A stretch of DNA of 63,049 nucleotides, the filler included, from Hyphochytrium catenoides (taxonomy: Eukaryota; Protista; Hyphochytriomycota), in NCBI GenBank assembly GCA_900088475.1. It is 3 parts of 3 records of this genome, joined end to end, with 100 filler letters (N's around TTAATTAATTAA, not from the genome) between each part and the next. Parts side by side here need not be neighbours in the genome. Positions count along the whole stretch, not along the records: positions 1 to 30,869 come from FLMG01003632.1; 2 more parts are not named here. One strand, given 5' to 3'. Of this stretch, positions 1,484 through 25,853 are shown one piece after another. Position numbers and translations under genes: made by a program. How positions within the stretch are numbered: the first letter of the stretch is position 1; every line of letters starts with the position of its first letter. A model generated the notes under the pieces. It was not told where the DNA came from and ran no database searches. It worked only from the letters and a program-made list of their open reading frames with translations.

Positions 1484-4400
1484 ATGCACCGGATGATAGA
1501 GGACAGCACGGGCGGAGGAGGGAACATAGGCGCGAGCTCTGAGCTCATCATCAGAAGGTCTCCGTCCTCCTCTGAAGAAAGGATGGCCGCTCTGCCAGCT
1601 TTCCAGAAGGAGACTGAGAGGAGAGAGAGAGAAGAAGATGAAGACCCGGAGAGAACTTCGCTCTCTTCTCCATCTTCTGTGTCTGACCTGCTCCTCTTCC
1701 TAGAGCGGGCGAAGGTCCCAAACCCCGTCTTCGCGGCCAATAAGCTGGAGCTCCGGCACGGAGTGACGACCAAGGAGGAGCTGCTTGAGATCTTAGCGCA
1801 TCCGGAGCTCGCTCTTGAGGTTCCGACGCTGTGCGCCTGCGACTGCTGAAGTTCTTGGAAAAGGAAAGAGGAGAAGGGGAGACGACGCTGCGAAGCTTAC
1901 AGCTCTCGGCACCTGTGTCTATCATAGAGCAACAAAGCAGCGCAGCAGCCATCGAAGAGAGGAGCGTCTCTGTCTTCTCATCTTCCACCTCTTCTTTTCG
2001 AGCAGTTGAAAGGTTCTGGGGCGGGAAGGCACAGCTCTCTCTTCCATGTGCAGTCCAAAGCGAGGACACCACCTCTGCCTCAGCCCAAGTAGTAGAAGAA
2101 GAAGCAGCATTTCCTCCTTTTCTGTGCTGCAGACCGTGTGGAGATGATGGGCCGGAGCTGCAGGTCCTACAAGGAGATTTGACGGCTTGTCGCGCCGACG
2201 CCATCGTCAACCCTGCCGACTCTTGTCTCAACCACGGCGGCGGCCTTGCGGGTGCCATCGCTGCGGCTGCAGGGCCCTCCATCAAGCGGGAGAGTGACCG
2301 CTGGATCCGGACGAACGGTTCTCTCCCGGTAGGACGCGCCATGTCAACTGCGGCAGGTGACCTTCCTTGCCGCTACGTTATTCACACTGTGGGTCCGGAC
2401 CTGTCCAACCGCTTGTCCTCCCAGTCCAAACCAACCCAGAAGGACACTGAGTTACTGAGAAGTGCAGTTCGGAGCTCACTTCTCGAGGCGGAGAGGCTTC
2501 ACCTCTGTTCTATCGCCATTCCAGGCATCTCGACGGGGATCTTCAGCTATCCGAGGGCGCAAGCAGCTCGAGAGATTGTGGAGGAGTGCTGGAGGTTCTG
2601 CTATCGCGGCGATACCAGCTTGCGCAGCATTCTGCTGGTCAATATTGATCAGCAGACCTTCTCCGCCTTCCGAAGCGCAGTTTGTCGCGCAGCAGATGAG
2701 GCTGGGACCATGGTCATGCCTTGTGACGGCTTTCCTTTCGTCCTCGACTCGCCGCGGTCGCTATTGTGCAGCCAGAGAGAGGGACTCGCGACACGCATAC
2801 CCAGTGCACGTACAGAGAAAGGGGATGGGGAAGAGTCGCGCTATAAGGCCGGAGGCATCCTCTTGGTGAGGGTCAATGGGACCGACCTGGAAGTCCTCCT
2901 GGGTGTAGAGTTCCGTCCAATGGAACGAAAAGCTGAGCGGTATCTGAACCTTCTGGGAGGCAAGGCGCACTCGGGAGAAGACCCACTATTGACGGCTTGT
3001 AGGGAGTTCAGCGAGGAGGTCAAAGGGATCATCAGCTGCTCTGACATGCTGAGCCAGATGGAGGAGAAGGGCCAGAGGCTTTGGCTGAGCTTCGCAAAGT
3101 ACTTCGCCTTCCTTGCGCACTTGGATGACCCACGGATACACTCTCTCCCGGAAGAGTTTGACAGAAGAAAGAGACACAACAAAGGGAAGATGCGGAGCCT
3201 GCAAGGTGCTATCCGAAGCTTTCTCCCCTGGGACACAGAAGACGAGGCGGCCATAGGGGATGAGCAGGATCACTTGTTATGGGTCTCCTGGAGGGAGCTG
3301 TTGGCCGTGTGCAGAGACTTCAAGAAAGGGAAGGTTCACACTCCCTGGGGCAGCTTCAAGGTGTCAGAGTTCCTCAGGAAAGTGGTGAACACGTACAAGG
3401 AGAAAGCAGAAGAGATCTTCCAATTGCTTTGCCTCCGCACGGAGCTGGAGAAGGAGCTGAGGAGAGTGGACGGGCTGGAGATGCAGAGCGATGAAGAGTT
3501 GACGACCAAGCTGCTAGGTTCCTCCTGGAGACTTCAGCTGCAGGGTCCCCCTCCTCCCCCTCCTTCTCCCATCCAGACGCTCCCTCCCGAGGATGAGGAC
3601 TATAAGGAGCTGCTGAAGGCTCTGCCAAAAACCTTTGCCAGTTCTGTTGTCAGCATCCGCAAGGTCAAGACGGCAACCCGGCAGGCTAGTTTTCTGCAAG
3701 AGCTGCAGCGCATGAAGGCTGAAGCTAAAAAGACAGCGCCTGAGGTCCTCCAGCCGCTGTTCCACGGCACTCCAGAGCGCTGGCGCGCCACTGCCATTGC
3801 TATGCACGGGTTCAACCTTAGCATCAAGTTGCATGGTCGTTCTAGCGGCAATGGTGTCTACACCTCGACTGATCCACAGGTAGCTTTTCCATACACTGGA
3901 CCCAAAGGCTCGGTGCTGCTTCTCAGAGGTATCAAGGCCACAGACTGCCAGACTCAGGGTGACAACACCATTGTTAGCTCATCTGCAGTCTTTATCTTCC
4001 CTAATGCCAAAGCGCTCCTGCCTCTGCTCATTGCCGACTTTGCCGCCTCCGACGAGAGAGATGCCGTGGAGCTGGGACGAGAACAAGCCCTTGAAGAAAT
4101 ACGCAAGGAGAAAGAAAGACAGCAAGTCATGAAAGACCAGATCAAGGAGAGAGAGTCACAATGCCTGAAGGACATGGCAACGCGACTGCGGAACACCCTG
4201 CAGGTCTATTCTGGGCAGCTAAGAAAGATTGAAGAGCGTTCGAGCTTGCTACGAGCATCTTCCTCCGCTACACTCGCTGCTGCTGAAGAGGAGAGGATGC
4301 AGGAGACACGCGGTGCTCCTCTTCCCAAGAAGACTAAGGGCAAACTTGTAAGACTGGCTGGCCTATCGTCGGTGTCTCTATCTCCCTTGCGGCTTTTCTT

Positions 4401-7400
4401 GATGGAGAAGTCTCACTTCTCAATGGGACTGCCCTTGTACGAGTTCAAACCTCGAATTGTCGAGCTCATTCGGAGCAAGGAAGTACTGGTCCTGATGGCA
4501 GAAACAGGGTCAGGAAAGAGCACCCAGCTGCCGCAGATCATCCTTGACGAAGTGTTGCCTTCAACAGACAAGAGGCGCATTGCTGTCCTAGAGCCACGAA
4601 GAGTGAACGCCATCTCCCTCTGCCGACGCGTGGCGCAGGAGCGAAAAACGGAGCCCGGAGAGGAAGTGGGCTATACCATCGGCCGGGGAGAGTCTAACGT
4701 CACAGCCACAACACGGATTGAGTTCATGACACACGGGCTTTTCGTCCAGCTGGCGAAAGATTCAGAGTTGCTTCTCAAGTGCTACTCTGCCGTCATTGTC
4801 GATGAGGCGCACGAGCGGTCCGTGGACGTGGACTTGTCTCTTGCACTGCTAAAGAGAGCTTTGAAGCACTTGCAGAGCACCAAGAAAGAAGACGACGACG
4901 GAGGGGGAGGGAAGAGGATATTGGATGCAGCCCAAGAGGAAAGCTTCTTCCGCGTCGTGGTCACTAGCGCGACCATTGAGGCGGAAGCCGAGCGGTTCAG
5001 GGACTATCTGAGTCCTGCTCAGGAGAAGTCTGCGCTTCTTTCTCTTCCTGGAAGGGCATTCCCGGTGCTTGTAGAGCATCGAGAGGACGCAGAAGTAGAC
5101 GCCGCCGTCATAGGGACAGCAGGGGTGGGCAAAGTCCTTTCTTCTTACGCCACTCAGACGGCGGTGGACCTCTTAAGAAGCACCAAAACAGGAAACATTC
5201 TCATTTTCTTACCTGGAGAGGGAACCATCAACGAGGCCGTGCAAGTGGCAAAAGCGCAGATGCTTGGCCCTGGCCCAGACGACATTGAAAGGGAGGAAGA
5301 GAGCGAAGAGGATCTTTATCGTGCTGGGACCTACAACTCTTTCTTCTTCCGCATGGAGCTGGGGTCCAAGGAAAACGAAGGACAAGAAGAAGGACATTCA
5401 ACTATCTTGGCAGAGAGTTCTGGCCGAGACACAGAGGAAAGCCAGTCTAAAACAGGGCAGAGGAAGACAGAAGAGGAGAAGGGAGAGCACACGAGGAGAG
5501 AGATTGCAGTCTGCGTCATCGGCTTCCATGGGAAGATCTCCCGTTCAGAGCGTGACCTCGTCCTCAACCCGCCACCAGACGTGAGGATGGTCATCTTCAC
5601 GACAAACCTCGCCGAAACAGGGGTCACGATCCCAGAGGTGAGGTATGTCATAGATACGGGTCTGGAGCGGCGCGTGCGATGGAATAACGTGCTGGACATT
5701 AATGAGATGGTAACAGATAGAGTGTCGGCTTCTTCAATGAGGCAGAGAACTGGGAGAGCCGGAAGAACCGCGAGCGGGATCTGTATCAGACTCTTTCCTG
5801 CGTCAGAAGTAGAGCAACTCCGTTCCTTGCCGCCTCCAGGAGTCCAGAGCTCGATGATCTACAAGGTCGTTCTGCTGATGAAGCTCCTTCAGAGCAAAGA
5901 ATCGAAGGAGAAAGAAGAGGAGCTGGAGCTGTTGGACCCCATTCCTCCTGTCCTGCTAGAAAAGGCCACGGAGAACCTTCTGGGTCTAGGAGCTCTGCAA
6001 GAGGACGGCAGCCTGACTCGGGAAGGGAACGCGCTCCTTACTCTGGGGGTCGATCTGCGCCTGGGACGCTTCCTCCTTGCTTGCGGGCACTTCGGCTGCC
6101 TCGTCAGTGGGCTGAAGATTGCCTCGGTGCTGGTGGCTGCTGATGCGCCAGAGAAGCTCCTTCCCCAGCGTGGTTGGTCTCTTCGTCGACCCTATATCCA
6201 GCGTCCTCTTTGATTGACCCGAGCGGAGATCATCTGACCCTGCTTAACATTGTTAATGCCTTCGAAGGCGCCAAGAGGAAAGGACGTGAGCTCAATTGGT
6301 GTCAGGTTCACTCGCTGGAGATGGATGTGCTCCTAGATGCAGAAACCGCCCGGAATCATCTTATGAAGGTGCTGAACGACTTGGGATTCTCGCTCGTTGA
6401 CGAAGAGGATAAGTGGAAGGAGAATGGAGGGCTCCGCCGAGCGCTTCTGAGGGCTCTATGTGCCGCCTACTGCGACCAGTTGGCCATAGAAGGAGTCCAG
6501 GCCATCCTAAGGCTGGCTACACCCGCCTCTTGGACGAAGAGAGGAAGGCAGGCGCCCTTAAGGTCGTGGCCCAATTCGCGGAGGAAACACAGCCGGAGAA
6601 CCCCTACGGCTCATCCCCATCTGTCCAGGGAGGTCGGCAGAAGAAGGGAGGATTTGCGGATAGCCAAGAAGAGGAGAAGAAGAGCGAGAAACAGTACTTA
6701 AGACAACAACTATTGCCTTCTACGTCCCCTTCTTTTGTGGCGTCATCTCCCTCCTCCGCCTCCCTTCCAGCGGCACAGCACTCGCAGGTGCCAGTTGCGC
6801 AGCAGCAGGAGCCCGTGGTGAAGCTTGGAAGCTGTTCCACTCTTTGGCACCTGGACGGCACACCCACATCACCAGAAGGAGGCGTCAAGGCCGATGCTGC
6901 TGGTGCCCAGGATAAAGGCAGAGGAGGGTTCCGGCTGGTAGTGTTCAGCTCAATCATGCTGACCGATGGCGGTCGTCGCCCGGAGCCGACCGTGCAACTC
7001 CTCAGCGTCGTCAATCCCGAAGATGTTACGGCTGGCGCCCCAGAATGGTGCCGCCTTGCTGAGTTTGATGCGCTACTGGACCAGTCGAGGCCTCAGACCC
7101 TCACTTACCACCTGACGCCGGGGATGCGCCGCACGATACTTATGGACCGCGGTAGGTGGCTGGGGAAGCTTCATCGCAAGTTCCCGTCAATCGCTGCTGC
7201 TGTAGAGGGAGACAAGCTCATTGTCTCTTGTCCCTTGCGGTCCTTCGCTCTCATCGAGTTCCATATCCACCGCCTGCTCGGCGGGATGGCTGCCGAGACT
7301 GTCGTTCTGGACCTGCCCAGGAAGGCAAACATGGGACTTATAATAGGGAAGCAGGCCCAGAATGTCAAGAGCTTGCGGGACAGCATCAACACCCTCTTGG

Positions 7401-8329
7401 CCACAGAAAGTAAGGGCGCGGGAAGGCGCCACGTGAGCCCTTCAGCAGTCATTGTAGACGCAGCGAACAGGACAATCAAACTCACGCTGGAAGGGGCCTC
7501 GAAGTCTCTGATGAGCGCGATTGTGGGCCGTATACAGTCTCACATTATGCGTGCACAAGGGGCGGACGTGGTGCCTAGAGTGGCCATTGCCTCCGGTCCC
7601 AGAGGCCAAGAAATGCTCCAAAATCCTCGGCTCCGGATGCTGACCTCCTCTGAGCCGCCATCTTCTTGGTCCAGCAGAGACGACGTTATGCTGCAGCTAG
7701 CACATGCGCTCGTGTGGAAGGGAAATGTGAGCATCTACGGCGGATTCCTGCGCGATTGGGTTATCAGGGGGGAATCTGCTAGCGACATTGACGCCGAGAT
7801 CTCTCCTCCGGCCACCACCGTTTCTTCTGTCTTGCGGATGCTTCGAGTGCTACTGGCTCAGCCGCAGCCCTCAGCAAGGCGACTGACAGTTAGCACTAAA
7901 GGTCCCAAGGGCGCTGCCATCGCTCTCATGGTTAGCGGTCCAGAGATCCGGCCAATCGACATTGATCTGGTGGATCCCTCTGCTGTCACCCCGCAAGTGG
8001 CACCCGGAGTAGACAGTGACGCGGGGAACTTGCTGTTGAACAAACAAGAAGCGCTGAGGAAGAAGATTCCAGGGACAGGCGACGCCCTTCGGTCCAGCCT
8101 CGAGCACGTGAGAAAGAAAGAGTTTATTCTCTTCTACGATCTCTTGGGCCAGCACCATGACAGAGCGCTTGTACGCCTAAGGAAGTATCTCCAACGAGGG
8201 TGGACATGCCTTTCCCCTGTACCTCCACAGGTGCTCCAGACCCTGCCGGAGGCTGAGCAACAGCTTGTCAGGCCTAAGCCTAAACATGACAGAAAGTGGT
8301 GGATGGAAGGAGAAGCTGCCAAAGCCTGA
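1484..8329 (+). CDS. Multidomain SAM-like/Macro/NUDIX/PARP-type ART/DEAH-box RNA helicase/KH/nucleotidyltransferase protein (~2,280 aa), split by three apparent single-base frameshifts
   Basis: ORFs 1427-1849, 1831-6213, 6174-6701 and 6413-8329 overlap in successive -1 frames. Macro: GDLT..IVNPAD..HGGGLAGAI..HTVGP..PGISTGIF (~2155-2685). NUDIX box: GGKAHSGEDPLLTACREFSEEVKG (~2955-3027). ART: LFHGT..GNGVYTS..LLPLLIADF (~3570-4042). Helicase: AETGSGKSTQLPQ, EPRR, DEAHER, SAT, FLPG, TNLAETGVTIP, QRTGRAGR (~4425-5770) and SGDHLTLLN (~6222). KH-like: MGLIIGKQAQNVKSL (~7330). NTase: IYGGFLRDWVIRGESASDID (~7733-7792). Confidence 0.88.
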
Positions 8330-9202
8330 ACCCTGTCGTGCTAGACGACTACGCAAGTTAAGGAGACGGGACGACGAGCTAGTTTGCGCGCAGATGAGCA
8401 TGGAAAGCCTAAAGGATGGAGAACAGCAAAGAGACGGGGAATCAAAGGAGAGAAAAGATAGATAGAGAGAGAGAATACATGGGGAGGACGAGAGATGTAG
8501 GGGGAGCAGCAAACATCGCCAAGGGAAGCGACCGGCGGGCTGCTTATATGTGATTAGCTGCTAATGTTGAGCTGACTTAAGAATAAGAAGTTGTTCTTTT
8601 GGCTGGCACCACTGGATCCGTTACCACTGCTCATTGCAGCTAGCAGGTCTTCAGGTCTACCCCGGACAACTAGTGCAGCCAGCTCCCGCCCCTGGCTCTC
8701 ATACACTCAGAACAACTTGCAGCGCAAAGGCTATAGGCTTCTCTTAGTAGTCCGCTCGACAAAAGATGTTCGGGAACACATACAGTGCGAAGTAATTGGC
8801 TCTGACCCCAGTGCCGTCTAAGGGTCTAGCCCAAAGAGGGAGAGTGGCTCCGTTCGAAGTAAGACACTCATCTCTTCCCTCTACAGCTAACCGTGAACCC
8901 AGACTTAATAAGGAAGAGTTGCACTGCATCCTCACCAAAGTATTGTGTATCCAGACTGAGTGAAGGGCGTGCCTTCCCCGAAGCACCTAGCCGTGCGGCG
9001 CTACCTGGAGCTCTACCCGTCGCTCACTATTGCTAGCTGCAGAGCCCTTGTGTAAGGTATCGCCACCGCACCAGGCTGATTGATGGTGAAGCAGGATTGA
9101 TAGTTGGCACTGAAGGCCTCATGAGCATTTCTCCTGAGAAGTAGTGAAGCGCCGCCCTCAGGCCCGAATCCAGGTCCTGCTTTTCCAGGCTGCGCCAGCT
9201 TA

Positions 9203-10929
9203 TCATGAGAAGTTGACTCTAGCGATGTCCCACGGCCCAGTGATCTCGCTGAAGGTAAGAGCCAAGGAGTCAGTAACAGAAGACACACGGCGTGAGCCTA
9301 GAGAGAGATGGTGGGGACTTACTACTTATAGATCTGCAGGTACAGCAGCCAGAGCGGAGCGAGAAAGGAGAAGAAGCAAAGAGATAGAAACACGACGACG
9401 GCTGCCTTGACCGAGACGGCGGCGACCATTATCAGCGTCAGGACAGACTGGAGCACAGTCAACAGAATGTGCATTCTCTTAGAGTAGGACTGGAGCCATC
9501 GGCAAACGACGGTACATATATATATAGAGAGAGAGAGGGAGAGTCAGAGAGAGAGACACACAGAGAGAGGAGAAGGTCAATGAAGGTTAATCACTGCTCG
9601 ACAGGCAGAAGATAAACCATATGCGCGGTAAGAACTGGTCAAAGGAAAAGGCCAAGTACAGAGAGTTAAGTGCAATCGAAGCAAACTTGGAAGAGAGAAG
9701 GACTAACATGAGCGAGTGCGAGAGACAGAGAAAGCTAGAGGATGAGGGGCAGACGATACTTAGGCATCTGACAGCGTCGGGGGTTACCTTCACGTGGTGC
9801 CAAACAAGCGGCAGGAGACCAAAGAGCTCAAAGGCAAAGAGTTCGAAGCCGAAGACATGCTCATTAGAAGGCATTCGAGATGACATTAGGACCGAGGTGA
9901 AGCCAATAGCATTAAGCGAGATCGCGCCTGTGTATCTGTGGACATACAGACAAACACGCGATACTGAGGACTACTTTGGGCTGTTTGGGACGGGCTAGAG
10001 GTAGGAGAAGGGCTCTCACCTTGACCGAGTAGCGAAGAGGTAGATGTAGTCGTAGGTCAACAGATGAATGAAAGAGAGAAGGATCGTTAACGCCCAGATG
10101 GTATCCTCTGAGTAGCTCTCTGTCAGCGTCTTCAGCACTGGAGACAGAATGGAGAGAAGGCTGGGGAAGAGAAGAAAGCTCTTGATGGCAGACTTGAGAT
10201 CTGTACCAGGTTTGAGGATTCAGGGTTCGGGGAGAGAGACAAAATAGAAAAGAGAGAGAGAGAGAGGAAAGAGAGTGAGAGAGAGTGAGAACCATGAGGG
10301 AGAGAACGAAGGAAGAGAAGGAGTTGGTGACCGGACAAGCCTCTGAGGTAGCGACAGCAGAACAGAGACGTACCGTGGGTCTTATCAAACGCGCTAAGGG
10401 CTTTGTATCCGACTACTATGATCGCCAGGTCGACGGCTAGAAGGCTATTAAGTGAGAAAGTAGACTCTGACATGCAGATGAAAACCACCTACAATCCAAG
10501 ATATCGTTAGGCTATTGAGGTGACAGAAGCAGACCAGTGGATAGGCAAGACTTACGAAGAGAATGATGACAGAGAGAACCTGCTGCGTGACCACCAAGCT
10601 GCCAATGACAAGGTCCAACAGGTTGTATGATCGTACATTAGCTGCATCAAAAGCTGTGAGGGAGAAGGCTGCACCTCGGAGCTGGGTAAGGCCGGCCTAC
10701 CGTTAGTTACGAGCTCGTTGAGAAAGCTCGGGCTGACCAAATAGTCCGGTGACTCTCCGACCTCATAGAGCCGCTTATGATAGCTCTCCTACAAGGGAAG
10801 ACGCCTCAGAAGGAGTCCTTAACCTCTTAAAGCCTCAGTTAAAGAAAGAACGAACCGTGCCATGCCCAGCTCGGCTCCCCATGCCAGTCGGATCCATCCC
10901 TCGCCGACAGGGTAACTGAAGCACACCAT
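9203..10929 (-). CDS. PIGC: Phosphatidylinositol N-acetylglucosaminyltransferase subunit C (GPI2/PIG-C), multi-exon; start at 10929 or 10863
   Basis: Spliced minus-strand exons read HKRLYEVGESPDYLVSPSFLNELVTN, YNLLDLVIGSLVVTQQVLSVIILF, VLKTLTESYSEDTIWAL..HLLTYDY, SLNAIGFTSVLMSSRMP..FELFGLLP and a terminal ITGPWDIARVNFS* (stop 9203-9205). These match PIG-C family motifs in order. Confidence 0.85.
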
Positions 10930-11423
10930 CCACAGTCCAGACGGCAAGAAATCGGCACTGTCAACTGAAGACAGCAGCCAGCCGCCTCATCTTATCTTGC
11001 CCAGACCCTGAGAGATCCCAGATTGAGATTTATTTGAAGCTTTTTATCGCCAATCTATTGCAGAGATGACCGTTAGCGGTCAAAGAATTTGAGCGCTGCC
11101 TTTTGCCGCGAACTTTTTGGTTTTTTGGCGCGGGAACTTGGCTCTCAGTCTGCAGGAAGTTGCAGTGCAGGAAGCAAGCCTTTGAAAACGCCTCAGAGAT
11201 CAAGAATCTTCATCTGCGAACTCTTGCTTGCGCTGTAGTGAAGCCTACAAGGCCATTTTCTATGTCTTGCCTGACGTGAACTGGCTTTCATGGAACTCAA
11301 GAAAGTGTGAAGTGCATAGAGTGTTGAGAACCTTGAACAGAAGCTACTGGGCCAGCTCCACTCCCTTTCATAGAGGCAACTGCGTTTATTGACAGTATTT
11401 AGGCTTGATTACGTCAGAGAAAG

Positions 11424-13897
11424 ATGCTGTGGGTGATCAGTATCGGCCGAACTCCTTGGAGAAGCTTGACTACCATCCTGAGGTGACCGAACGGCTAAAG
11501 AACCTGGTAAGTTGACGCGGCTCAGTCCAAGCGTAAAGCCTCTCCTCTTACCGCGTAAACGGCGGTCTAGGCAAACAATGGAGAGATTCCCCACCTTCTG
11601 TTCTATGGCCCGCCAGGAGCAGGCAAGAAGACTCGCATCATGGCCTTTCTGAAGGCAGTCTTTGGCCCAGGCGTGGAGAAGGTAAGTCGCAAGTGAAGCA
11701 ATCCAAAGCCGCTTGCCTGCAGACTAACCTAACTGCTCCGCTCCAGCTCCGCCTCGAACATAAGACTTTCCAGGTAAATGGCATGGACAGCCTTGAAGCT
11801 CTATCTATTTGGTACCTAACTCCTCTCCCTCCAACCTTCCAGGTGCCGAACGCTAGCAAGACAAAGGTTGACATCACAACGATCGCAAGCAACTATCACA
11901 TAGAGATAAACCCAGCGGACGCTGGGAGTCGAGATAGGTTCGTGGTACAAGAAGTGATCAAAGAGATCGCGCAGTACCAGCCACTCGACACTAGCCCCAC
12001 AGCCAAGTCTTTCAAAGGTATTTAGCAGTCCTCTAGCCGCTCACCAGCCCACAAGGTCTGCCTATACTCTGCGCTTCGTGCTCCTAACCCTTATCTCCGA
12101 CTTCAATCTATGCCATCGCGCACATTTCTCTTCCAATCTAGTCGTCCTGCTGATGGAGGTAGACCGGCTATCAAAACAAGCCCAGCACGCGCTAAGAAGG
12201 ACCATGGAAAAGTACGTTCTGAGTGCTTGACGAAGAGTTAGTAGTCCTCCCACCGCTGCGAACAGGGCGCGGCCCGCCTTACAAGGGCTTCCGCTCCTCT
12301 CTCGTCTCTGTAAAAGGGCTTCTAACTTACTTCTCCTTCATCTTTTGTAGATACTCCTCATCGTGCCGGCTTATCCTTTGCTGCAACAACGCTGCTAAGG
12401 TCATTGAGCCAGTGCGAAGTCGATGTCTTGGCGTCAGAATTGCAGCCCCGTCGCACGATGAGGTATGTGAGAGAGCAGGAGGAAGAGGACAACAGTTAGA
12501 GTAGAGCCAAAGATACAGGGACGATAGCTGAGAATTAAAAGCCACAACTCTGCCCCTAACTGCGTCCTGTATAGATTGCAAACGTGCTTAAGGCTGTCAG
12601 CAAGAAAGAAAGCTTGCAACTGCCTCCCAAGTTTGCCGCTCGCGTTGCTGAGGCGTCATCGCGAAATCTGAGGCGCGCTCTGCTTATTCTTGAAGCTTGC
12701 CGAGTGCAGAAGTATGGCCAGCATCTTGGGCTTTTGAGGAGCTCACATCTTGCCATCCTCTGCCTGCTCTTTATGTGCTTGTCTCTCCGCCCCAATGTGT
12801 GACTCTATTTGTAGATCAATGGAGGCCATCCTTTGTCTGGGCCCCTTGACTTCAAGCGTCCTCCTGACCTTGCCTTATGCTCTCTCTCTCTCTCTCTTTA
12901 GAGTGTCATTCGTTCTTCTTTCTCTCTCTTCAGCTGTCCCGTAATTCTCTGATGTTCGTCGCTCTGTCTGGCTCTCTCTTGCTTTTGCTGCCCCTCGCGC
13001 CTCTTGCTTTTCTCAGCAGTAAGGATCTCTCTTCTCTCTCTTATGCGACAGATACCCCTTTTCTGATGATCAGGATATTCAACTGCCGGACTGGGAGCTA
13101 TTTATCGGCAAAGTGGCCACCAAGATCCTGATGGACCAGTCACCCGGCGGGTAAGCATAAAAAGTTCCCAAAGCTCGACTGTGTAGCCGTCTAAAGGAGA
13201 CCATGAAGAGAAAAAAACGACGGTGGAGAGCAGAGATTCAAATTCGTTAAGTAGGTAGAGCTTGGCAGAGAAGAAGAGATGAACGCTTTAGAAAACATGC
13301 TGGCAAGGGACATCAGCAGCGGACGTAGTCACAGACGACGAGGCTGTCCTTCATGACTGCCCTCCCACCACAGGCTTCTGGATGTCCGAGGCAAGCTTTA
13401 TGAACTGCTGTCCAACTGCATTCCCGCTGATACAATTATCAAGGTACGCTGGAAGTACAGAGTCTTAAGTGTTTTGCTCCTGGTCCTTGTTGGGCCTTTG
13501 CCATTTCGGCTACTCTCCTACCCTTCTCCAGCCATTCGTTGTCTTCTCACTAGTCCCATCCCTTTTCCTTAACTCCCTAGGCACTTGTCCGAGAGTTGCT
13601 TCCCAAGTTAGATCAAGAGCTGCAGTTCAAATTGCTCCATTGGGCAGCTTTCTATGTGAGTCTCCTCATCTCTCGTTCACTCTCTCTTGACTGCGTTTGC
13701 CCCCTTCCCCAACCATTCCTTGCCCCTATTGTTTCTCTGTTCGCCTCCCCGAACCTCTCAGTGTTGCCTCTAAAGCAATGCGCTCCTGGCAGGAACATCG
13801 GGTGCGGACTGGAAGCAAAGAAATATTCCATCTCGAGGCCTTTGTGGCGCGCATCATGAGCGAGTACAAGCGCTTCGTCATTGAGTGCTACATGTGA
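11424..13897 (+). CDS. RFC3: Replication factor C subunit 3 (human RFC3/yeast Rfc5 type), multi-exon
   Basis: MLWV(D)QYRPNSLEKLDYH (needs one extra G at ~11435), PHLLFYGPPGAGKKTRIM, SNYHIEINPADAGSRDRFVVQEVIKEIAQ, EVDRLSKQAQHALRRTMEK, VIEPVRSRCL, RNLRRALLILE and GSKEIFHLEAFVA. GT-AG introns include ones flanking a 27-nt exon at 11747-11773. Confidence 0.93.
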
Positions 13898-14886
13898 CCT
13901 CGCTGCTCTGTCTTACTCTTTGTTATTTGCTATGCGCCATAGTCCAGTACCATTCTATCTCTTCGGTGGTCGCACTCCATAGATCCTGCCTCTGCCCACA
14001 ACCTGTTGCTATGGCTACATATCTCGCAGCGTTATCACGCCAGAGCCATCCCTCCATTTTGGGTCAGCTCTTGTTGGCCCAGCTGGCAGCAGCTAGGATA
14101 AGGCTTATCAGGCACCGATAGAGGATGACTGGCGGACGCTAGCCGGATGTGAGAGAACAGACAAGGATTGCATTTCCACGAAGATTAACTTAGCTAGAGA
14201 GGCTGCAGCTGCATAGATCTAGTCACAAGTTCAGACTATTAACATTTCCAACCAACAAGCTAACTCCGTGTAAACCATCGAAGCTTGACCGATGAACTAC
14301 GATGAACTCCAATTGTTCCTCCTCCAAGCGCTACTTCATTTGCTTTTCGGGTGCGCTAAGATGGGGCCTTTCTACTCCTATCCGAGGCTTCCTCTTTATA
14401 AGTATTGTGCCTGACAGGAGAAACACTCCGTTCCATGACGATCAGCACCTTTCTTTAAACAACCCTCAGAGATCCACCCTTTTCCTTCTTCTGTCTTTTG
14501 CGTGCTGCCTTGCCTCCTGCCTCATTCAATCCGTCGAGACTCAAGACCCGTCCTCCGTTGATCTTCGATCTTCGTCATCGCAGCTTCAGAATTCATGACT
14601 CTTCATTAAGAGAGCGGTTAGCAGCTCGATTTGGAAGTTAGTCCTGGGGGACGTTGGGAGGATTCTGTTCTGGAAGCGGAGCTTTCTCAAATCTTCATTT
14701 TAGGAGTTTATTGCGCAGATTTCCGCGCCTTTTGCGGCGCTCTCGTTGGACTCTAAGTTGCTGTTGGCCCCAATGTGTGGAGGGCGAAAAAGACGAAGAA
14801 AGGATGACATGAGAGAGTTTATCAAGGAAGTTGCGTGACATCTTGTGTTACCTGTCTCTCTATCTGGCTACGGGCTGGCGAAGACG

Positions 14887-17175
14887 ATGATTGCTTTGAT
14901 TCCTCCCTTCCGCTTCAGCGTAGTAGAGCACAATGTTTATCGAGGCGCTTACCCCACGCTCAAGAACTTTGCGTTCCTCAGGAGGTATCTCCCTGGGCTC
15001 TCTCTTTAGTCTCAGTCTCTTTGTCCTGCGTCCTATTCTCCTGCGAACCATACAGTCCTCCTTCCTCTAGACCTGGAACTCATGCTTTCTCTCTCTTTAG
15101 ACTATCCCTTAGGTCCATTATCTCGGTCACTCCTGAAACTCCTACCACGGATCTGCTGGAGTTCTGCCATCACGAGGGCATTGCTTCTTACTATCTTCAG
15201 TGCGATAAGGTGACTGATCATGTCACTCTTGATCCTACCATCGTCTCACAAGTGCTCAGTGTAAGTGCCTGCTAATTAGTCACAGAGAGAGACACAGAGA
15301 GAGAGAGAGAGAGAGAGAGACGGACAGACAGATCTCAGACGAAAGTTGAGAGCGGGAGAGACGAAAGAGAGATGTAAGTAGAGATTGAATGAGAGACGAG
15401 GAAGCCCAAGAGAGATAGAGACAGAGATAGAGACAGAGGGAGAGAGAGACAAAATTAGAGAGAGGGAGAGAGAGAGAAGAGAGAGAGAGAGACAGAGAGG
15501 AGAGAAACAGAGTATAGTCAACGGTCAAGATAGCCCGGTCTCAAACTACTTTTCAATCTCTCTTTCTGTCTGAGGTCTCCTAGAAGGACTCTCCTTCTTC
15601 TCACTTGACACACAACGACACAAGTCTTCCCTTCCTTTGCCCGACATTCTGTCTCTGTCAGTACCTTTCATCATCGCTCTTTCGCTCTACGTTTGCGTCT
15701 CTCAGTCTTTCTCACCGTCTTCGCTTCCATGTTCTCTCTCTCGCCTTTCGCTCGTTTTCCGTCGATTAGATACTTGTAAACATTGAGAATGAGCCTGTGT
15801 ACATCCACTGCCTGGACGGCGCGAACGTCACGGGATTGATCATTATGGTCCTGAGACGTCTTCAAAATTGGAACCTATCGGCTATCACGGCTGAGTTCTG
15901 CCGGTAGGGACCTTCCTCTCTCTGCTCTCTCTCTGTTCTCTCTCTCTGTTCTCTCTCTCTCTCGCTTTCCATCCCTTTCTGTATCTCTCTTCTTCCCTCT
16001 CACTCTGTCTCTCTCTCTCTCTTAGCGATTGTCTCTCCCATTCCGTGGATCTGTCTCTCTTTCTCGGCAATGTGTGCCTGCCCATCGCTTCTCCTGAAGC
16101 GGCTTGCCTCCAACTGCCGTAAACCTCCCATACATTTTACTTCATCTTCCCTTCTACTCCCTGCTATCTCCTATGTCTCTCTCGTTGCCACTGAGTTGCC
16201 TCTTCGCTCCGCATGACAGGTTCACTCATGACCACACGATTGAGAAGGAAGAGTCGCAGTTCGTGACTAACTACACAGAAGACATTATCATGCCCCCTAA
16301 GGTGCCGCGCTGGCTTTGGCAGGGCGTGAGGATTGTCAAGCATCCGACGCTGAGGCTAAGGCACGACCCGCCGCTCAACGCTGAGAACGATGGAGTTTCG
16401 AATGCCTCCATCAGCACCGGCGGCATGTTCGGCAGGTAAGAGGGGGTCCTCTTCTCTGGTTCGTCTCTCCCTTTCTCCTTCCTCTTCCTTCTCTATCTCT
16501 ACTTCCCCTCTCTCGCTCTGTGCCCTTCACTTTCTCCCGCCACCGTGCGCTCATCCTCTGCGCTCTGGCGCCATTTGATTTCTTTCTGCAAACCTTTCTC
16601 CTCGACTATCTTTCGGTGTCTTGCCCCCCCACACTATCTATTTCTTTGTCTTTCTCCTCCCCGCTTCTATGTCTTTGTCTGTCTTTTCCCCACATACTTT
16701 TCTCTGTCTCTCTCTCTGTCCGCCCTCTCTCCTTCTTGAAGTTATGTCTTTTTCTGTCTAGTCGGGTCGGCTGTACGCTGGCCTAAAAATCGTCTGATTC
16801 ATCCGGTTTCCACGAGTTGCATCGCCACCTGCTTTGTTTAGTATAAGCTATCATCGCTCTGCGCCATTCAACCTCTTTCACCTTCATGTTTTCTTCTGAG
16901 CTTTCCCTCTCTCCCGTGTGGGCATGTCTCTCTCCCTCTCTCATCCACATTCACCGACACAAAGTCTCAAGCATCATTGTCTCCTAATCTACAGTGAGCA
17001 TCCCGGAGAGACTGGCAAAATCAGAAGCTTTGTACAGCGCGTAGAGTTGGACGTCAGGAGCGAGGAGAGGTTTGAAGGGGTAGAAGGAGAGGAGGTTGCC
17101 GAGACAGGAGTCTCTCGGATGATTAGCGCCTTAGACTTGCACGGGATAGACAGTCTTAAGACGGTATGGAGCTAG
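14887..17175 (+). CDS. PFA-DSP/Siw14-family tyrosine-phosphatase-like protein, OCA6-like (probably inactive); multi-exon, 3' end uncertain
   Basis: Exons read LIPPFRFSVVEHNVYRGAYPTLKNFAFLRR, LRSIISVTPE, PVYIHCLDGANVTGLIIMVLRRLQNWNLSAITAEFCR, KVPRWLWQG and SRMISALDLHG. Confidence 0.78.
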
Positions 17176-17537: not shown

Positions 17538-20500
17538 TCAGAGCTTTCTCCGCTTCCCTCTCTGTTGATTTCTTGCTGAAGCTTCTTCCTTTTGCAGCTT
17601 TGTGAGCTTGATGGGCTCAATGATGGCGCCACGGCGAGTGATGACCTCGGGCCTTGTGAGCTTGTGTGTGGCAGTTGCCGTGTTCCAATCCCGCCCCAGA
17701 GGGTTCCTCAGAGACCTTTCGTACTGCTCTCTTGACGTGAAGGGGTACGGAACCTGAGTGGCCGTGTACTTGGCCAGCTATAGGGAAAGAGAGTCAGAGT
17801 CTCACCTTAGCTTACAACTCGTTGTCCTGGCCGCAGCCCTTCCTTCTACCTCCTCCATTTGTTTTACCATCTTTCCTGCTTCTTCTCTCTCTCTTTTTGT
17901 CTCTCTCTCTCTCTGCTCTCGTTCTCTTTCTTCACTTGCGATGACGTATTTATGAGGTGGCTTAGTCCCTTACCTTTTTGTCCCTCTTCTCATTAATAAT
18001 CACATGTCGAAGCTTGGCATCGGTTCTGCCTTCCAGAGCCTTGGCCTTAGCCTCCTCCACTTTCTCCTTGTAAGCTCTCTCTTTCTCCTTCTGACGCCTT
18101 GAGGGCTGTACGCCGATTCCAGCCCAGCTTCCCCACCCAGCGACGCCCACAGCAGCCTAGAAGTTAAAAAAGCGGACAAGGGCATAAGCAACCAACTATA
18201 GACAGAGCGAGAGCAAAAGGAGTACCTTGGGATCGAGCTTGGAAGTGACGGCGATGTCTGCCTCTTCCTCCTTCTCTCTAATGAGCTCTTCCTCTAAGTC
18301 ATCATCTAGAGCAAACGCTTGGCGCACCAATTCTTCCGTACCATCCTTCTCTCTGTTCCTCTTTTTGCCCTTAGCACCCTCAGTTATTGTGTTAGCCTGC
18401 TTCTGCTCTTTCTCTTTGATCTTCACGTCCATTTTCAGAGGCTTAGCAGCTTCATTCAGAGCTGCAGCAGCCAAGCGCTTGTTCTTCTTTCCGTGCACGC
18501 CTCTCAGATCCTTTTTCTCTGTCTGCTGCGTACTGGAGGCAAGGAGCCAAGGGTTCTCGCCTTTCTCCTACGGAGTGGGGAGGTAGTAAAGAAAGTCAGA
18601 CACAATCGCCACTCAGAGAGCATAGAGCGACAGAAGAGAAAGCCTGAGGGAACACTGCATGGTCTACCTGAGGTCGCTCGGCTTCCTTTGTCTTTTGGCT
18701 AGCTTTCGGTCCTTTAGCTGGGGTTATGACCTCCACCTCCGTCCTCATCACCTTCACCTCTGATTCTGATGCGTGGTCATCCTCTTGGTCCTCGCCGCTC
18801 TCGCGCTGCTTTGGAAGAGAAACGGAGATGGGGCCGTCCACCTTTGAGGAGAATCTACCGTCCATCTGGACGAAGGTTGCCTGCATGCTACCTCCTGAAA
18901 GAACGGCTTTCACAGCCTTTACGTCTGCCTCCGTGATCTGCTGCCTCTTCCGGTCCTTTCTAGCTGTTGAAGCCGCCGGATCAGGCCTCCTTTCGTCGCT
19001 ACTCGACCATTCTTCTTCTTCCTTAGCTTGTCGAAGCTCGTGGAGGAGGCTTTCGGCCTCTTCTCGGGCAGCTTCCCGCTGTCTTTCCATTGCTTTTTGC
19101 ATGAACTTCATTGACATAAGACCTTTCTTAGGCGCCTCCCCGTCATCCTTGGTGGCCAAAGTAGCCTGTACTGCTTCTATTGTGGCCTCGGTGTCGCTGA
19201 TCTCCGAATCCGACTCTCCTACTCTCTCTATCTTCCTCTTCAGCTCTTGTGCTTGATGAAGCTGCTCAGCCACCGCCTTACGAGTATCCACATCCGCACT
19301 TTGCCCTTTTTTCAAGGCAGAACGAACCCAATCGGACGTATTCTGATGCCTAAGGCTCATCCTCTCGGCGGCGCGTCGCTCGGCGGCCTCCTCCTCCATC
19401 GCAGCTGCTGCCTCTGGGTTTGTCTCTCTTAGAAGCTCCAACTCTTCCTCTTTTGTCAGGCCCTTCTTCTGCTTCTTCCTTATTTTATGATAGAGCTTGC
19501 TCTTGATCTTCGAGATCCTCTTGCGCTTCTGTTCTTCATAGAAGATCAAGGACCGTAGCTTTGCCATCTCTGTGCCAATGACGGCACTTAGACATCGGTC
19601 CCCAGTGTTTGTAAGGTAAACAGAGCGCTCTCACCTGCATACTTTGCTTTAGCAGCCTCAGGGTCTAAAGACTTGTCTGCCAGCTCTCTGAGCTCTCCCT
19701 CTGCAATCTTCTTCTCACTTTCCATCCCTGCAGATTGCAAGAGGTTCTGCACCGTCTTCTCCAACTCTGTGCTGGGCTCAAACTTGCTGGCCAGGGCAGC
19801 GTTAGAGAGGTTGGTCCGTGGAGGGACTTGCTGTGCCTTTAGATTCAATGTCTCCGCTTCCCTGTTCGCCTTTACCACTGCCTGGTACTTCGAGACATTC
19901 TCCTAGAGGGCATAAAAGAGAGACAGAGAGAGGTCAGCGAGGCCGATAACGTGAGAAGAGATGGGAAAAGGTAAAATAACTAACCGCAGCTTTGCCATAG
20001 GCGACTTTTCTCTCTGCACGCTCCTCTACAATGGCAGCTCTTGGAGCAGGAAGTGGCCCATCTTTGCTACTTTTCTTGTTAGTGGAGAGCTGCTTCTTCA
20101 GCGTGCTCACTGCTGTTGAAGACTCTGTCAGTGAGCCCATGAGAGTCTCCAGCGTCAGCTCTTCAGTTGGCGCTGCTCCGAACTCAGACTCAGGTGCTGC
20201 CTCAGTAACAGCTCTCTTCTTTCTAGATCGCTGTTTGCCGTCCACTTGGACTCCAACGAGACTGAGAAGATTTCGATGCTTTTCTTCATCTGTCTCGCTT
20301 TCTTCGTCCGTGGATTGAAGGTCTTCTTCATCATCAGCTGTGGGCTTTAACCCGTCATCGACCGTGGAGAGTCTTTTCTGCGGCTCGTCTCCTAGCAGGC
20401 TTGAGAGCATAATCTCTCCATCGTGCAAAGGGCCCTCATCGTCATCTTCCTCCTCGTCCTCCTCATCATCATCGACGTCTGAGGTTTCGTCTGCCTCTGC

Positions 20501-20788
20501 GTCCGCCTTACGCTTCTTACTATTCTTGTTGATGGTTTCGAGAACGGCTCCATATATTTGTTCATCTTCAGAGTTGAAGGCATCATCCTCGCTAATCTCT
20601 TCATCTTCAAAGTCTGAAGGAAGCTCCGCCTCCGCAATGGTATCAACGTCATACTTCCCAGCTAGTTCTCTCTTGTCAACTACTTCTTCGTCCTCATACA
20701 CATCATGCCCCGATTTCCCTTGAGAGCTGGTCGGACCCTTCTTCTTGGTCTTTGCCCCTTTCGAGCCGCGTCCTTTGCCCTTGGCCAT
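17538..20788 (-). CDS. UTP14: U3 snoRNA-associated protein 14 (SSU processome), multi-exon
   Basis: Acidic N-terminus (DEEISEDDAF), MAKLRSLIFYEEQKRKRISKIKSKLYHKI, RAAERMSLRHQNTSDW, GLMSMKFMQKA, GWGSWAG, HVIINEK and VPYPFTSREQYERSLRNPLGRDWNT..GAIIEPI. Confidence 0.93.
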
Positions 20789-23628: not shown

Positions 23629-25853
23629 ATGAGCAGGATGGACCTCCCCCATCAGGCGAGGCGCGTACAACTCAGGCCGGTGATCCTAATCTGTCTCAGC
23701 ATCTGCTGTTTGCCGGCATCTGCCCTCTCTGAGTATCAGTCAACGCTGCTACCTAAGCCCTATGAAGAGAGCTATGGGACCGACGTCGTCACTCTGGCGC
23801 CTGTAAACTTTAAGTTTGACGTGGTAGGAAAGTCATCCAAAGTTTTGGAAGAAGCTATTAAGCGGTATAGGGGTTGGACATTCTGGAAGACGGGCGGACA
23901 CATGGCAAGCTCAGAGCCCTCCTTGGAGTCTTTGAATTTTCTAGGCTCACTGATCTCCAGCCTGTCAATCAATGTGACATCGAGCTCAGAAGAGCTGAAT
24001 CGTGATACCGACTACGCCTACGAGTTAAGAGTTACATCCCAGGGCGCATACCTTGAGAGCCCAACCGCTTATGGCAGTCTTTATGGCCTGGAGACCTTTT
24101 CCCAGCTCATGGAATATATCGGAGAGAACGCAGGTGAGACAGAGCTCGGTGACTGAAAGGGGCGAGCAGGATAATTCTGATCCAGGCCTTGTAAAAACAC
24201 AGTTGCAGGGCACGGATATCGGATCAGCGGTATCCCTGTGACGATAAAGGACAAGCCGCGCTTCTCTTACCGCGGCCTACTGGTAGACACCTCAAGGCAC
24301 TACCTTCATCTGAGCACCATCATCAGGAATCTGGACGTAATGGCTTGGCACAAGTTGAATGTCATGCACTGGTAAGGGGTAGCTCACCAAGCTTCGGCCC
24401 ATTGCGCACTTATTATCCCTTTAATCTCTGGCAGCGTCTGCTTGTTTGTCCTGATATTCTCTTTCTAAGGCTCTCGAGGCCCCCTATCTCTTTGATTTGA
24501 TGCCTTTCTTCTGGTGCCAAGTGACGACAGTCCTCTGCTGCTCCTATCTTAAACCTTTCACTCAGTCCGCACCTGATCGGTCTTGCTGCTGTTGGACCGT
24601 CTCACCGGCGCGTCTTTGCTTGATAGGCACATCGTTGACGAGCAAGCCTTTCCTTACGTTTCCAAGACCTTCCCTCGTCTGTCTGGCAAAGGTGCATATA
24701 ATGCTCAGCACACGTACACCATGGACGATGTGCGCCTTGTGATAGAGGAAGCCAAGTTGCGGGGCATTCGTGTGGTGGCAGAGTTCGACACGCCGGTATA
24801 AGACTCGGTTGCTCTCTCTCGTCCCATCTTGTTCGGTTGTGGTGTCTCTCTCTTGCTCGACCTGCAAGAAAGCTTGGCCACTATTTCCTTGGTTTCTTGC
24901 ATCTAGCTGACTCGTATCCCCACCATAACGCAGGGTCACACTGAGAGCTGGGGCAGAGGTCACCCAGAAATTATGTCGCATTGTCCTGGCCCTTCCCAAC
25001 CTCTGGATCCCAGCAATGAGAAGACGTACGACTTCCTTGAAAAGCTATATGAAGAGCTTGCTGGCCTCTTTCCTGAGGAGTATATGCACCTCGGTGGGGA
25101 TGAAGTTTCTTTCGACTGCTGGAGCAAGGATCCAACTATCACCGAATGGATGAAGAAAGAGAATATCACAACGTATGCCAAGGCAGAAGAATATTTCGCC
25201 TCTCGCTTGCTCTCAATCGTTACGAAGCTGGGAAAGAAGGCAATTGTATGGCAAGAAATGTTCAACAATGGGCTGAAGCTTGCCGCGGACACTGTTATCG
25301 ACGTTTGGATGGGTGGATATGACAGCAAAACGATCACGGAAGCTACAAAGGCAGGTTATCACGTGGTCTTGTCTGGGTGCTGGTACCTGGACAACACTGG
25401 CGCTTCATGGCAGGACTATTATCGCTGCGAGGTAAGGTAGCCATAAGGTTGGACCGTGAAGGCGGTTAAGGACAGGCTAACAAGATGCTTCTGCTAACGT
25501 ATTTGCAGCCTCAAGCGTTCAATGGAACTCCTGAGGAGATGAGCAGAGTGATGGGAGGACACGCCTCTATGTGGGGTGAGAGAGTGGACCTCTCGAACTT
25601 CTTTGGGCGCATTTGGCCACGTACTTCAGCCATTGCTGAGCGGCTATGGAGCAAAAGAGAGGTGAGGGATGAAGGAGATGCTGGCCGGCGACTATCTGCA
25701 CAGCGCTGTCGCATCATACGCCGAGGCGTTCCCGCTGAGCCTTGGGAACCTGGGTATTGCGACGAGGAGCTCGAAGATGCCTGGGGATTGAGTAAAAGCG
25801 CAGTGACGGTACTTCCTGGAGGCGTCGAGGACGCACGCATGTCTATCGACTAG
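23629..25853 (+). CDS. Beta-hexosaminidase, glycoside hydrolase family 20, multi-exon
   Basis: Signal-peptide-like N-terminus, [57 protein letters not shown], catalytic [20 protein letters not shown] and [13 protein letters not shown]. Confidence 0.93.

Follow-up and report, generated by a model that had tools for sequence, protein, structure and literature searches.

A conserved eukaryotic family joining macro, NUDIX and PARP-type domains to a DEAH helicase, KH domains and a predicted nucleotidyltransferase, with a frame-broken member in Hyphochytrium catenoides

PARP14 (ARTD8) is among the described proteins that come closest to the product of the gene analysed here, which lies at 1484-8329 (+) of a 63,049-nucleotide (nt) stretch of DNA from Hyphochytrium catenoides (the window, assembly GCA_900088475.1). 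Like the window protein, PARP14 carries a hydrolase-type macrodomain, KH domains and a mono-ADP-ribosyltransferase (mono-ART) domain with an H-Y-hydrophobic triad in one chain, which is thereby both writer and eraser (PMC10499325, PMC10470015), and this on protein as well as nucleic acid (PMC10499325). The two differ in that the window protein has a single macrodomain and an internal ART, whereas that of PARP14 is C-terminal, and in that it adds a NUDIX domain, a full DEAH helicase and a nucleotidyltransferase (NTase). PARP12, with an H-Y-I triad where the window protein has H-Y-V, provides the best solved match of the ART profile. Unlike PARP12 and ZAP (PARP13), however, the window protein has neither CCCH fingers nor WWE, and its ART, which has a deletion ahead of the final strands, falls short of theirs by about 30 residues. 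ZAP recruits separate helicases and nucleases, whereas a helicase and an NTase are present in cis in the window protein.

For the RNA-associated part, the TRAMP complex (Trf4/5, Air1/2, Mtr4) assembles a tail-making NTase, an RNA binder and a helicase on the same RNA 3' end. A Pol-beta NTase, an RNA binder and a 3'-to-5' helicase would be common to TRAMP and the window protein, but TRAMP consists of three proteins with a Ski2-like helicase and a Trf4/Cid1 NTase, whereas the window protein is a single chain with a DEAH/RHA helicase and a class-II-like NTase head; no exosome link is known for the window family, and TRAMP is used here as a working analogy only. Motifs I-VI, HA2 and a probable OB region are held in common with the DEAH/RHA helicases Prp2, Prp43/DHX15, DHX8, HrpA and HrpB, from which the window protein differs by its large enzymatic N- and C-terminal extensions, an acidic insert between motifs IV and V, and the absence of a G-patch-partner context. 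The NTase shares the pattern GG(F/W)VRD-x9-DxD, a third carboxylate and the Pol-beta fold with the class-II NTases, TENT5/FAM46 and the giant-virus 'poly A polymerase head' proteins, but it lacks the neck, body, tail and nucleotide-selecting motif D of the class-II enzymes and has a motif of its own, PGVDxDxxN. The window protein is in parts a relative of the PARP14-type macroPARPs and not an orthologue. Macrodomain-bearing, RNA-associated mono-ARTs of clade-3 type are a known kind of protein; what is new is this architecture, together with an uncatalogued NTase family.

The locus holds a single gene of a conserved, uncharacterised eukaryotic family, present in the window as a frame-broken copy. 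Four successive open pieces follow one another on the plus strand, namely an N-terminal piece of 88 amino acids (aa) in frame 2, open up to 1849, and open reading frames (ORFs) of 1,460 aa (1831-6213), 175 aa (6174-6701) and 638 aa (6413-8329), none of them with an in-frame stop. As the original prediction had it, the macrodomain, the NUDIX domain, the ART and the helicase core all lie within the uninterrupted 1,460-aa frame; the 638-aa ORF carries the rest of the gene's domains, and outside the 1,460-aa frame a single-chain reading requires correction at three frame changes (Table 1). Homologues of about 2,000 aa are collinear with the window in tblastn (frame 2 at 1700-1831, frame 1 at 2041-6171, frame 3 at 6210-6485 and frame 2 at 6479-8275). 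The read-through product of about 2,250 aa comprises an N-terminal domain, Macro, NUDIX, ART, a linker, a DEAH/RHA helicase with HA2 and a probable OB region, two KH domains and the NTase. Pfam, family profiles and AlphaFold2 (AF2) models compared with Foldseek bear out the six domain types in the order first proposed, including the ART, NUDIX and NTase folds for which such searches had been called for.

That these domains belong to one polypeptide, as had been claimed, is supported by the collinear homologues and by two oomycete orthologues that are single uninterrupted ORFs of 5,994 and 5,883 nt. The same architecture is found in the choanoflagellate Choanoeca perplexa, in an entry labelled as a complete ORF of 2,053 residues on one assembled sequence. 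The conserved N-terminal domain of about 55 aa, which begins near 1679, is helical and can be aligned across oomycetes, Aphanomyces and Kipferlia. Pfam and PDB profile searches with it gave no match, and no signal-peptide-like hydrophobic stretch was seen by eye at the 5' end.

In the ADP-ribose half, Pfam places the macrodomain at aa 126-247 of the 1,460-aa ORF with 108.9 bits against a cut-off of 22. Both expected loops are present, the glycine loop HGGGLAGAI (2233-2259) and the second loop ISTGIF (2527-2544). The closest solved structures are macrodomain 1 (MD1) of PARP14 (1.1e-27; 1.8e-43 for MD1-2), then YmdB, PARP9 MD1 and MacroD. Since PARP14 MD1, YmdB and MacroD are of hydrolase type, this kinship makes it more likely that the domain removes ADP-ribose than that it reads it, contrary to the reader role first assigned to it. 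The Nudix box G-x5-E-x7-REFSEE is intact (G377, E383, R391-E-F-S-E-E396), and its REF.EE element is invariant across the family alignment, Nudix box glutamates included. Although the window domain scores 18.9 bits in Pfam, under the NUDIX cut-off of 21.1, homologues reach 30.1, 39.9 and 22.6 bits, and the family profile matches MutT and CoA pyrophosphatase in the PDB at 1.2e-5.

The triad of the compact ART consists of His645 (3763-3765), Tyr677 (3859-3861) and Val720 (3988-3990). His645, Tyr677 and a second tyrosine, Tyr688, are invariant in 15 sequences, the invariant columns of the family being H, G, T, Y and Y, while the third triad column holds V, I, F, S or W in the 15 aligned homologues and Glu in none. 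Because this position is never Glu, mono-ADP-ribosyl transfer is expected from the alignment, and not the poly-ADP-ribose formation of PARP1, PARP2 and tankyrase. Searched against the PDB, the 15-sequence ART profile matches PARP12 over nearly the whole domain (5.5e-8), TNKS1 (2e-7), PARP14 (3.5e-6), PARP10, PARP15 and ZAP, and 49 of the 53 matches listed are PARP-family chains. Pfam gave no match on the ART of the window, and its PARP family scores 19-23 bits in homologues, under the cut-off of 26.7.

The RNA half starts with the helicase, in which alignment shows all DEAH/RHA motifs (I, Ia, II, III, IV, V and VI) to be present and intact, with motif I at 4498-4524, DEAH at 4801-4812, SAT at 4963-4974, motif IV at 5200-5217, motif V at 5602-5634 and motif VI at 5743-5766. 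The insert between motifs IV and V is acidic and of low complexity. Against the PDB, the helicase matches Prp2-, Prp43-, DHX8- and DHX15-type proteins at 1e-56 to 1e-50 and HrpA at 1e-47; NCBIfam likewise returns HrpA/HrpB, and the best database matches beyond the protein's own family are bacterial HrpA. Pfam HA2_N and HA2_C are matched in homologues. The following region (6488-7080), which we take to be an OB fold from the usual motif pattern of DEAH helicases, contains a lineage-specific low-complexity insert of about 75 aa; it gave no Pfam OB match and is poorly modelled by AF2.

The assignment of a tandem KH-like di-domain is weak but consistent, in that Pfam, PDB profiles and a fold search of the model agree, each of them weakly. 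In a Pythium homologue, Pfam KH_1 scores 22.0 bits against a cut-off of 21.5, and the family profile matches the KH domains of uS3 and IGF2BP in the PDB at 9e-4. The AF2 model has a predicted local distance difference test score (pLDDT) of 78 and an order of secondary structure that fits beta-alpha-alpha-beta-beta-alpha. Its Foldseek matches are mostly tandem-KH proteins (IMP1 KH1-2, KHNYN, FMRP, Nova) with weak E-values of 1e-3 to 5e-2.

The C-terminal NTase displays the motifs YGGFLRD at 7736-7756 (residues 442-448) and DID at 7784-7792 (D458-I-D460) and a third aspartate, Asp518, at 7964-7966. The GG..RD and DxD elements and the third Asp are invariant in the family, so that motif A of the class-II heads is present, as is the family-specific invariant motif PGVDxDxxN at 8003-8029. 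No match was obtained in Pfam (PolyA_pol included), NCBIfam or PADLOC; the NTase profile has three PDB matches, all class-II CCA/poly(A) NTases, at non-significant E-values of 0.13-0.47. The AF2 model is predicted with high confidence (pLDDT 92, predicted TM-score 0.86), and Foldseek retrieves TENT5, CCA- and A-adding enzymes and bacterial poly(A) polymerase (PAP) from the PDB with a probability of 1.0, E-values of 2e-4 to 1e-3 and TM-scores (TMq) of 0.39-0.47. Taken together, the invariant motifs, the PDB matches and the fold scores point to a Pol-beta fold beside the RNA 3'-end transferases.

Better than any solved structure, the NTase model matches giant-virus NTases in BFVD (E = 2e-8, TMq up to 0.62). 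These are uncharacterised multi-copy proteins of Tupanvirus, Moumouvirus, Megavirus, Klosneuvirus, Mimivirus (L685) and Pithovirus, and the BFVD matches also include phage 'poly A polymerase head' proteins. Some of the giant-virus look-alikes are fused to RING fingers.

Seventeen full- or near-full-length relatives were recovered by a word-indexed protein search, and the NTase-domain profile finds 445 representative clusters at E <= 1e-3. Among the matches listed, about 30 clusters (50% identity) of some 1,500-2,200 aa have the full (Macro)-NUDIX-ART-helicase-KH-NTase order. Named members come from the oomycetes Phytophthora nicotianae, P. boehmeriae, Pythium oligandrum and Aphanomyces stellatus, from the chrysophyte Pedospumella encystans, from Choanoeca perplexa and from the metamonad Kipferlia bialata. 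From choanoflagellates to metamonads, across eukaryotic supergroups, the family keeps its architecture and catalytic residues, and neither WWE nor RRM was found by Pfam in the window protein or its homologues. Between the two oomycete orthologues, the one pair compared, dN/dS is 0.19 overall, a pairwise value that leaves site-specific positive selection possible. By domain it is 0.23 for Macro, 0.24 for NUDIX, 0.25 for ART, 0.13 for the helicase, 0.12 for HA2-OB, 0.11 for KH and 0.20 for the NTase, so that every one of the seven modules is kept by purifying selection; in this pair, sequence change in the ADP-ribose half proceeds at about twice the rate seen in the RNA half.

In the maximum-likelihood tree, the window copy groups with P0006 (support 98), and the two are sister to the Phytophthora/Pythium clade (support 100). 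P0006 (L001:243-4394, Logan SRR15309490), on a contig of 59% G+C, is the closest relative, with 53% identity; it has no ART and ends after the OB region, the lineage having lost ART, KH and NTase. A coatomer-epsilon gene lies downstream of it. Other members deviate in other ways. The Pythium oligandrum protein P0005 bears an inosine-uridine nucleoside hydrolase domain at residues 1883-2026 (Pfam 4.7e-30) after a truncated NTase, which could be a real additional fusion or a merged neighbour gene. A metagenomic subgroup (P0008, P0009, P0010) has an additional N-terminal KH domain and a macrodomain with a large insert and no GGG loop, which is thus probably inactive or binding-only. In P0251 (1,053 aa), an N-terminal NTase of the same family is joined to a C-terminal Ulp1 (SUMO protease) domain.

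The same NTase family also occurs in a second architecture of 2,000-2,800 aa, which opens with the DEAH helicase and continues with PARP, two WWE domains and the NTase (P0177, P0259, P0178, P0158, P0166 and P0226, from Paulinella, Chilomastix, Pedospumella, Aphanomyces, Lagenidium and Carpediemonas). The two WWE domains are seen in P0177, P0259 and P0178; P0177 bears CCCH fingers at its N-terminus, and P0177, P0158 and P0166 are matched by the family's KH profile. The CCCH, WWE and PARP parts of this architecture recall PARP12 and ZAP. The recurrence of helicase, PARP and NTase, in some cases with KH, in an independent arrangement suggests that these modules work together, and is the strongest internal argument for a joint function. 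A weak IBR match was observed in P0259. Pedospumella encystans has one protein of each architecture, P0013 and P0178, with consecutive gene numbers (gene8903 and gene8904), a hint that the two lie in tandem and are either duplicates or functionally linked.

The original prediction presented the fusion as a candidate undescribed system, with no characterised protein known to combine all of these domains. No characterised protein with this combination was found in the literature and no paper describing the family was found, a full-text search for the domain combination yielding nothing to the point, although an earlier in-silico mention in a review of ART natural history is possible. The protein is not a one-off, however, as it belongs to a conserved family already deposited as 'hypothetical protein', with UniRef names that include 'Poly [ADP-ribose] polymerase' and 'Nudix hydrolase domain-containing protein'. 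PARPs fused to a helicase, a NUDIX domain or an NTase are unmentioned in two PARP surveys (PMC2964712, PMC4245714), in a 2025 paper on Phytophthora infestans PARPs (PMC11766942) and in a 2026 review of PARP14 (PMC13224862).

By analogy with the systems above, we give about an even chance to the reading that the protein is an RNA-bound mono-ADP-ribosylation unit fused to a TRAMP-like tailing and unwinding unit, with a role in RNA surveillance or turnover. Its C-terminal half would be an RNA-handling unit working like a single-chain TRAMP complex, in which the KH domains and the probable OB region would hold the RNA, the template-independent NTase would extend the RNA 3' end, and the DEAH helicase would load on the 3' tail, translocate 3' to 5' and remodel the RNA or ribonucleoprotein (RNP). 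The N-terminal half would act as an ADP-ribose unit recruited to the same RNA or RNP. There the H-Y-V ART would transfer single ADP-ribose units, with the protein itself, RNP proteins or phosphorylated RNA ends as possible targets; ADP-ribosylation of RNA ends is a reaction of PARP10, PARP14 and PARP15. The PARP14-MD1-like macrodomain would take the mark off, and the NUDIX domain would cleave pyrophosphate-linked species such as free ADP-ribose, an m7G cap, or an RNA end capped with NAD or ADP-ribose. As a whole, the protein would serve to survey or turn over RNA, either foreign (viruses, transposons) or cellular, under the control of reversible mono-ADP-ribosylation.

Several observations weigh against this reading. 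The window copy, with its three frame breaks, may not yield one protein in the organism. Its Macro motif is NPAD (2203-2220), where 10 of the 12 homologues with a recognisable Macro have NAAN, NPAN or SPAN; the Asn at the last NAAN position is required for hydrolysis in Mac1 and MacroD enzymes, and the window copy has Asp there. In its Nudix box, the window copy carries Lys instead of the penultimate Gly, and the top matches of the NUDIX domain mix MutT, CoA-ase, ADPR-ase and DIPP enzymes and so name no single substrate. In most homologues the GXXG loop of the second KH domain is GKGG, where the window has GKQA (7340-7363). The NTase, of about 210 aa, ends the protein without the neck and body domains by which class-II CCA enzymes choose their nucleotides, and in Foldseek it reaches TM-scores of only some 0.45 against solved structures. 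Data on activity, substrate, expression or localisation were found for no member of the family.

If the proposed function holds, an ADP-ribose writer, an eraser and a NUDIX domain in cis with an RNA helicase and an RNA-end NTase would offer a natural all-in-one study system for ADP-ribosylation on RNA and RNPs, a subject known mainly from in-vitro work with animal PARPs. It would also define an uncatalogued NTase family, comprising the 445 clusters mentioned above and with structural relatives in giant viruses. The combination of Macro, KH and a clade-3-type ART would long predate animals, the present family occurring in protists across supergroups while PARP14 is dated to about 700 million years (PMC13224862). 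A more far-reaching version, which appears doubtful, is that the family and its CCCH/WWE paralogue are an ancient pan-eukaryotic single-chain RNA-surveillance machine, in which reversible mono-ADP-ribosylation of RNA or RNPs is coupled with 3'-tailing and unwinding. The machine would then be related, as an early form, to the antiviral PARP12/ZAP/PARP14 systems of animals, and the NTase would be a new family shared with giant viruses of protists.

Independently of function, the window copy may be a recently inactivated pseudogene, a possibility that we place slightly short of even. The frame is lost three times in 6.8 kb, all three breaks being of the same kind in that the frame is shifted in one direction each time. 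Break 1 falls within a family motif conserved from oomycetes to Kipferlia. At breaks 1 and 3 the frames overlap by 1 base, which leaves no space for an intron, so that introns are ruled out as the cause of both. At break 2, removal of the 29-nt GT...AG unit (6173-6201) makes the protein exactly collinear with all homologues, and the loop at this point is of constant length among the aligned homologues shown. It is unlikely that this unit is an intron, since the introns verified in the adjacent GH20 and Utp14 genes, with canonical signals, measure 63-96 nt, a length beside which 29 nt would be unusual.

Two further observations favour the pseudogene. The breaks lie outside the homopolymer runs of at least 5 bases, all eight of which are in frame, a distribution that is atypical of homopolymer sequencing error though not decisive; and the exons checked in GH20 and Utp14, two genes nearby, can be read without a break. 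The loss of ART, KH and NTase in P0006, the sister sequence, fits as well. Against it, no piece has an in-frame stop, 221 of the 228 near-invariant family positions (97%) are retained, more than in several intact homologues, and the terminal branch of the window copy in the family tree is short (0.48). The retained positions and short branch rule out a long-standing pseudogene. The copy must either have been inactivated very recently or have been assembled wrongly, with roughly even odds for each. The window copy is of lower value owing to its broken frame, and the intact orthologues elsewhere are better objects of study.

Among the functional alternatives to the surveillance reading, the dedicated innate-immune machine of the original prediction, with the helicase and KH domains as sensors of viral or aberrant RNA and with ART, NUDIX and NTase as antiviral effectors, is the first to be considered, and we regard it as unlikely. 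The macrodomain and the ART are nearest to PARP14, PARP12 and ZAP, clade-3 PARPs that have been described as antiviral and induced by interferon (PMC13224862), and the paralogous architecture has CCCH fingers and WWE like PARP12 and ZAP. The resemblance of the NTase fold to the multi-copy NTases of giant viruses of protists is of a kind seen in host-virus conflict systems, and the loss of ART, KH and NTase in the P0006 lineage also speaks for this view. Against it, PADLOC returned 0 matches for the window pieces and only marginal NUDIX- or helicase-type matches for P0003, and a sequence scan of IMG/VR with the NTase found no relatives. The pairwise dN/dS reported above does not exceed 0.25 in any catalytic domain, and the broad conservation of architecture and catalytic residues makes a pattern more like that of a conserved cellular function than that of an arms-race gene. 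The defence role thus found no direct support, and the kinship of Macro and ART with PARP14, PARP12 and ZAP and the giant-virus resemblance of the NTase are the only pointers to immunity.

Less probable still is a role in RNA repair or end-healing with clean-up of NAD by-products, after the chemistry of tRNA splicing. The ART-fold enzyme would make its transfer onto or from an RNA phosphate, the macrodomain would process ADP-ribose-1''-phosphate, the NUDIX domain would degrade ADP-ribose and a CCA-type NTase would rebuild 3' ends. CCA-adding enzymes and tRNA nucleotidyltransferases are indeed the sole sequence-level PDB matches of the NTase, but this NTase comes without their tRNA-binding body and tail. 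Similarly, the macrodomain resembles processing enzymes of YmdB/MacroD type and the family is strongly conserved; yet the ART clearly belongs to the PARP clade, with PARP12 as its best match, and is not Tpt1/KptA-like. Ligase, kinase and phosphoesterase domains were not found by Pfam in the window or in homologues.

It is very improbable that the NTase is a signal maker of OAS/cGAS type, activated by RNA bound to the helicase and KH domains, with NUDIX and Macro degrading the signal. Pol-beta NTases of several families do produce nucleotide messengers, and OAS1 is among the Foldseek matches (1.4e-3), but its TM-scores (TMq 0.28-0.30) are clearly below the 0.40-0.47 of the CCA enzymes, PAP and TENT5. 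In addition, GGFxRD-x9-DxD is the signature of class-II RNA-end NTases, and no CD-NTase family was matched in PADLOC. Finally, that several adjacent genes or a chimaeric assembly were misread as one fusion can be dismissed, for although three frame changes could in principle be gene borders, stops, start contexts and intergenic spacers are absent there, the homologues are collinear over every break with only short unaligned stretches, one transcriptome-derived complete ORF has the same order, and the two single-ORF orthologues, on independent contigs, rule out mis-joined separate genes together with that collinearity.

Table 1. Positions of the domains, frame breaks and neighbouring genes along the window
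Feature	Position	Strand	Evidence or remark
5' end, frame 2	1484-1831	+	candidate starts 1484, 1583; homologue residues 9-52 match 1700-1831 (tblastn)
Frame break 1 (frame 2 to frame 1)	1829-1833	+	window 1 base shorter than homologues
Macro domain, hydrolase type	2128-2730	+	Pfam Macro E = 1.9e-31
NUDIX domain with family-specific C-terminal extension	2833-3510	+	Nudix box 2959-3027
PARP-type ART, compact, about 170 aa	3544-4065	+	triad H-Y-V; family profile match to PARP12
Charged linker between ART and helicase	4066-4420	+	coiled-coil-like by eye; family alignment, no domain match
DEAH/RHA helicase: RecA1, RecA2, start of winged-helix/HA2	4423-6171	+	Pfam DEAD 1e-9, Helicase_C 6e-11
Frame break 2 (frame 1 to frame 3)	6172-6209	+	contains unique 29-nt GT...AG unit
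HA2 (ratchet), frame 3	6210-6485	+	GDHLTLLN 6225-6248; tblastn
Frame break 3 (frame 3 to frame 2)	6486-6488	+	1-base frame overlap; window 1 base short
Helicase C-terminal region, probable OB fold	6488-7080	+	LVVFSSIMLTD 6935-6967
Tandem KH-like di-domain	7085-7672	+	Pfam KH_2 0.02 (window)
Predicted Pol-beta-fold NTase, related to class-II head domains	7664-8326	+	motif and AF2/Foldseek
Stop codon TGA	8327-8329	+	
Utp14	17541-20788	-	neighbouring housekeeping gene
GH20 beta-hexosaminidase	23629-25853	+	neighbouring gene
Thioredoxin/PDI-like gene	27256-28400	+	neighbouring gene
Dual-specificity-phosphatase-like ORF	29343-30432	-	neighbouring gene

The window is intron-bearing eukaryotic DNA with GA/CT-rich low-complexity spacers. 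The neighbouring genes are housekeeping genes with no evident functional connection to the fusion gene, and an operon-like context is absent. Over the roughly 8 kb downstream (8330-16000), no ORF with a recognisable domain was found on either strand; this region could contain untranslated regions, lineage-specific genes or non-coding sequence. Scans of the window for rRNA, tRNA and Rfam families gave no match, and the ORFs antisense to the gene, without Pfam matches, are probably spurious. Long GA- or CT-rich tracts occupy the spacers (500-1480, 15280-15540, 16400-16800 and others) and translate as (SL)n or (ER)n. Purine skew is marked, switches sign near 11-12 kb and appears to track the direction of transcription.

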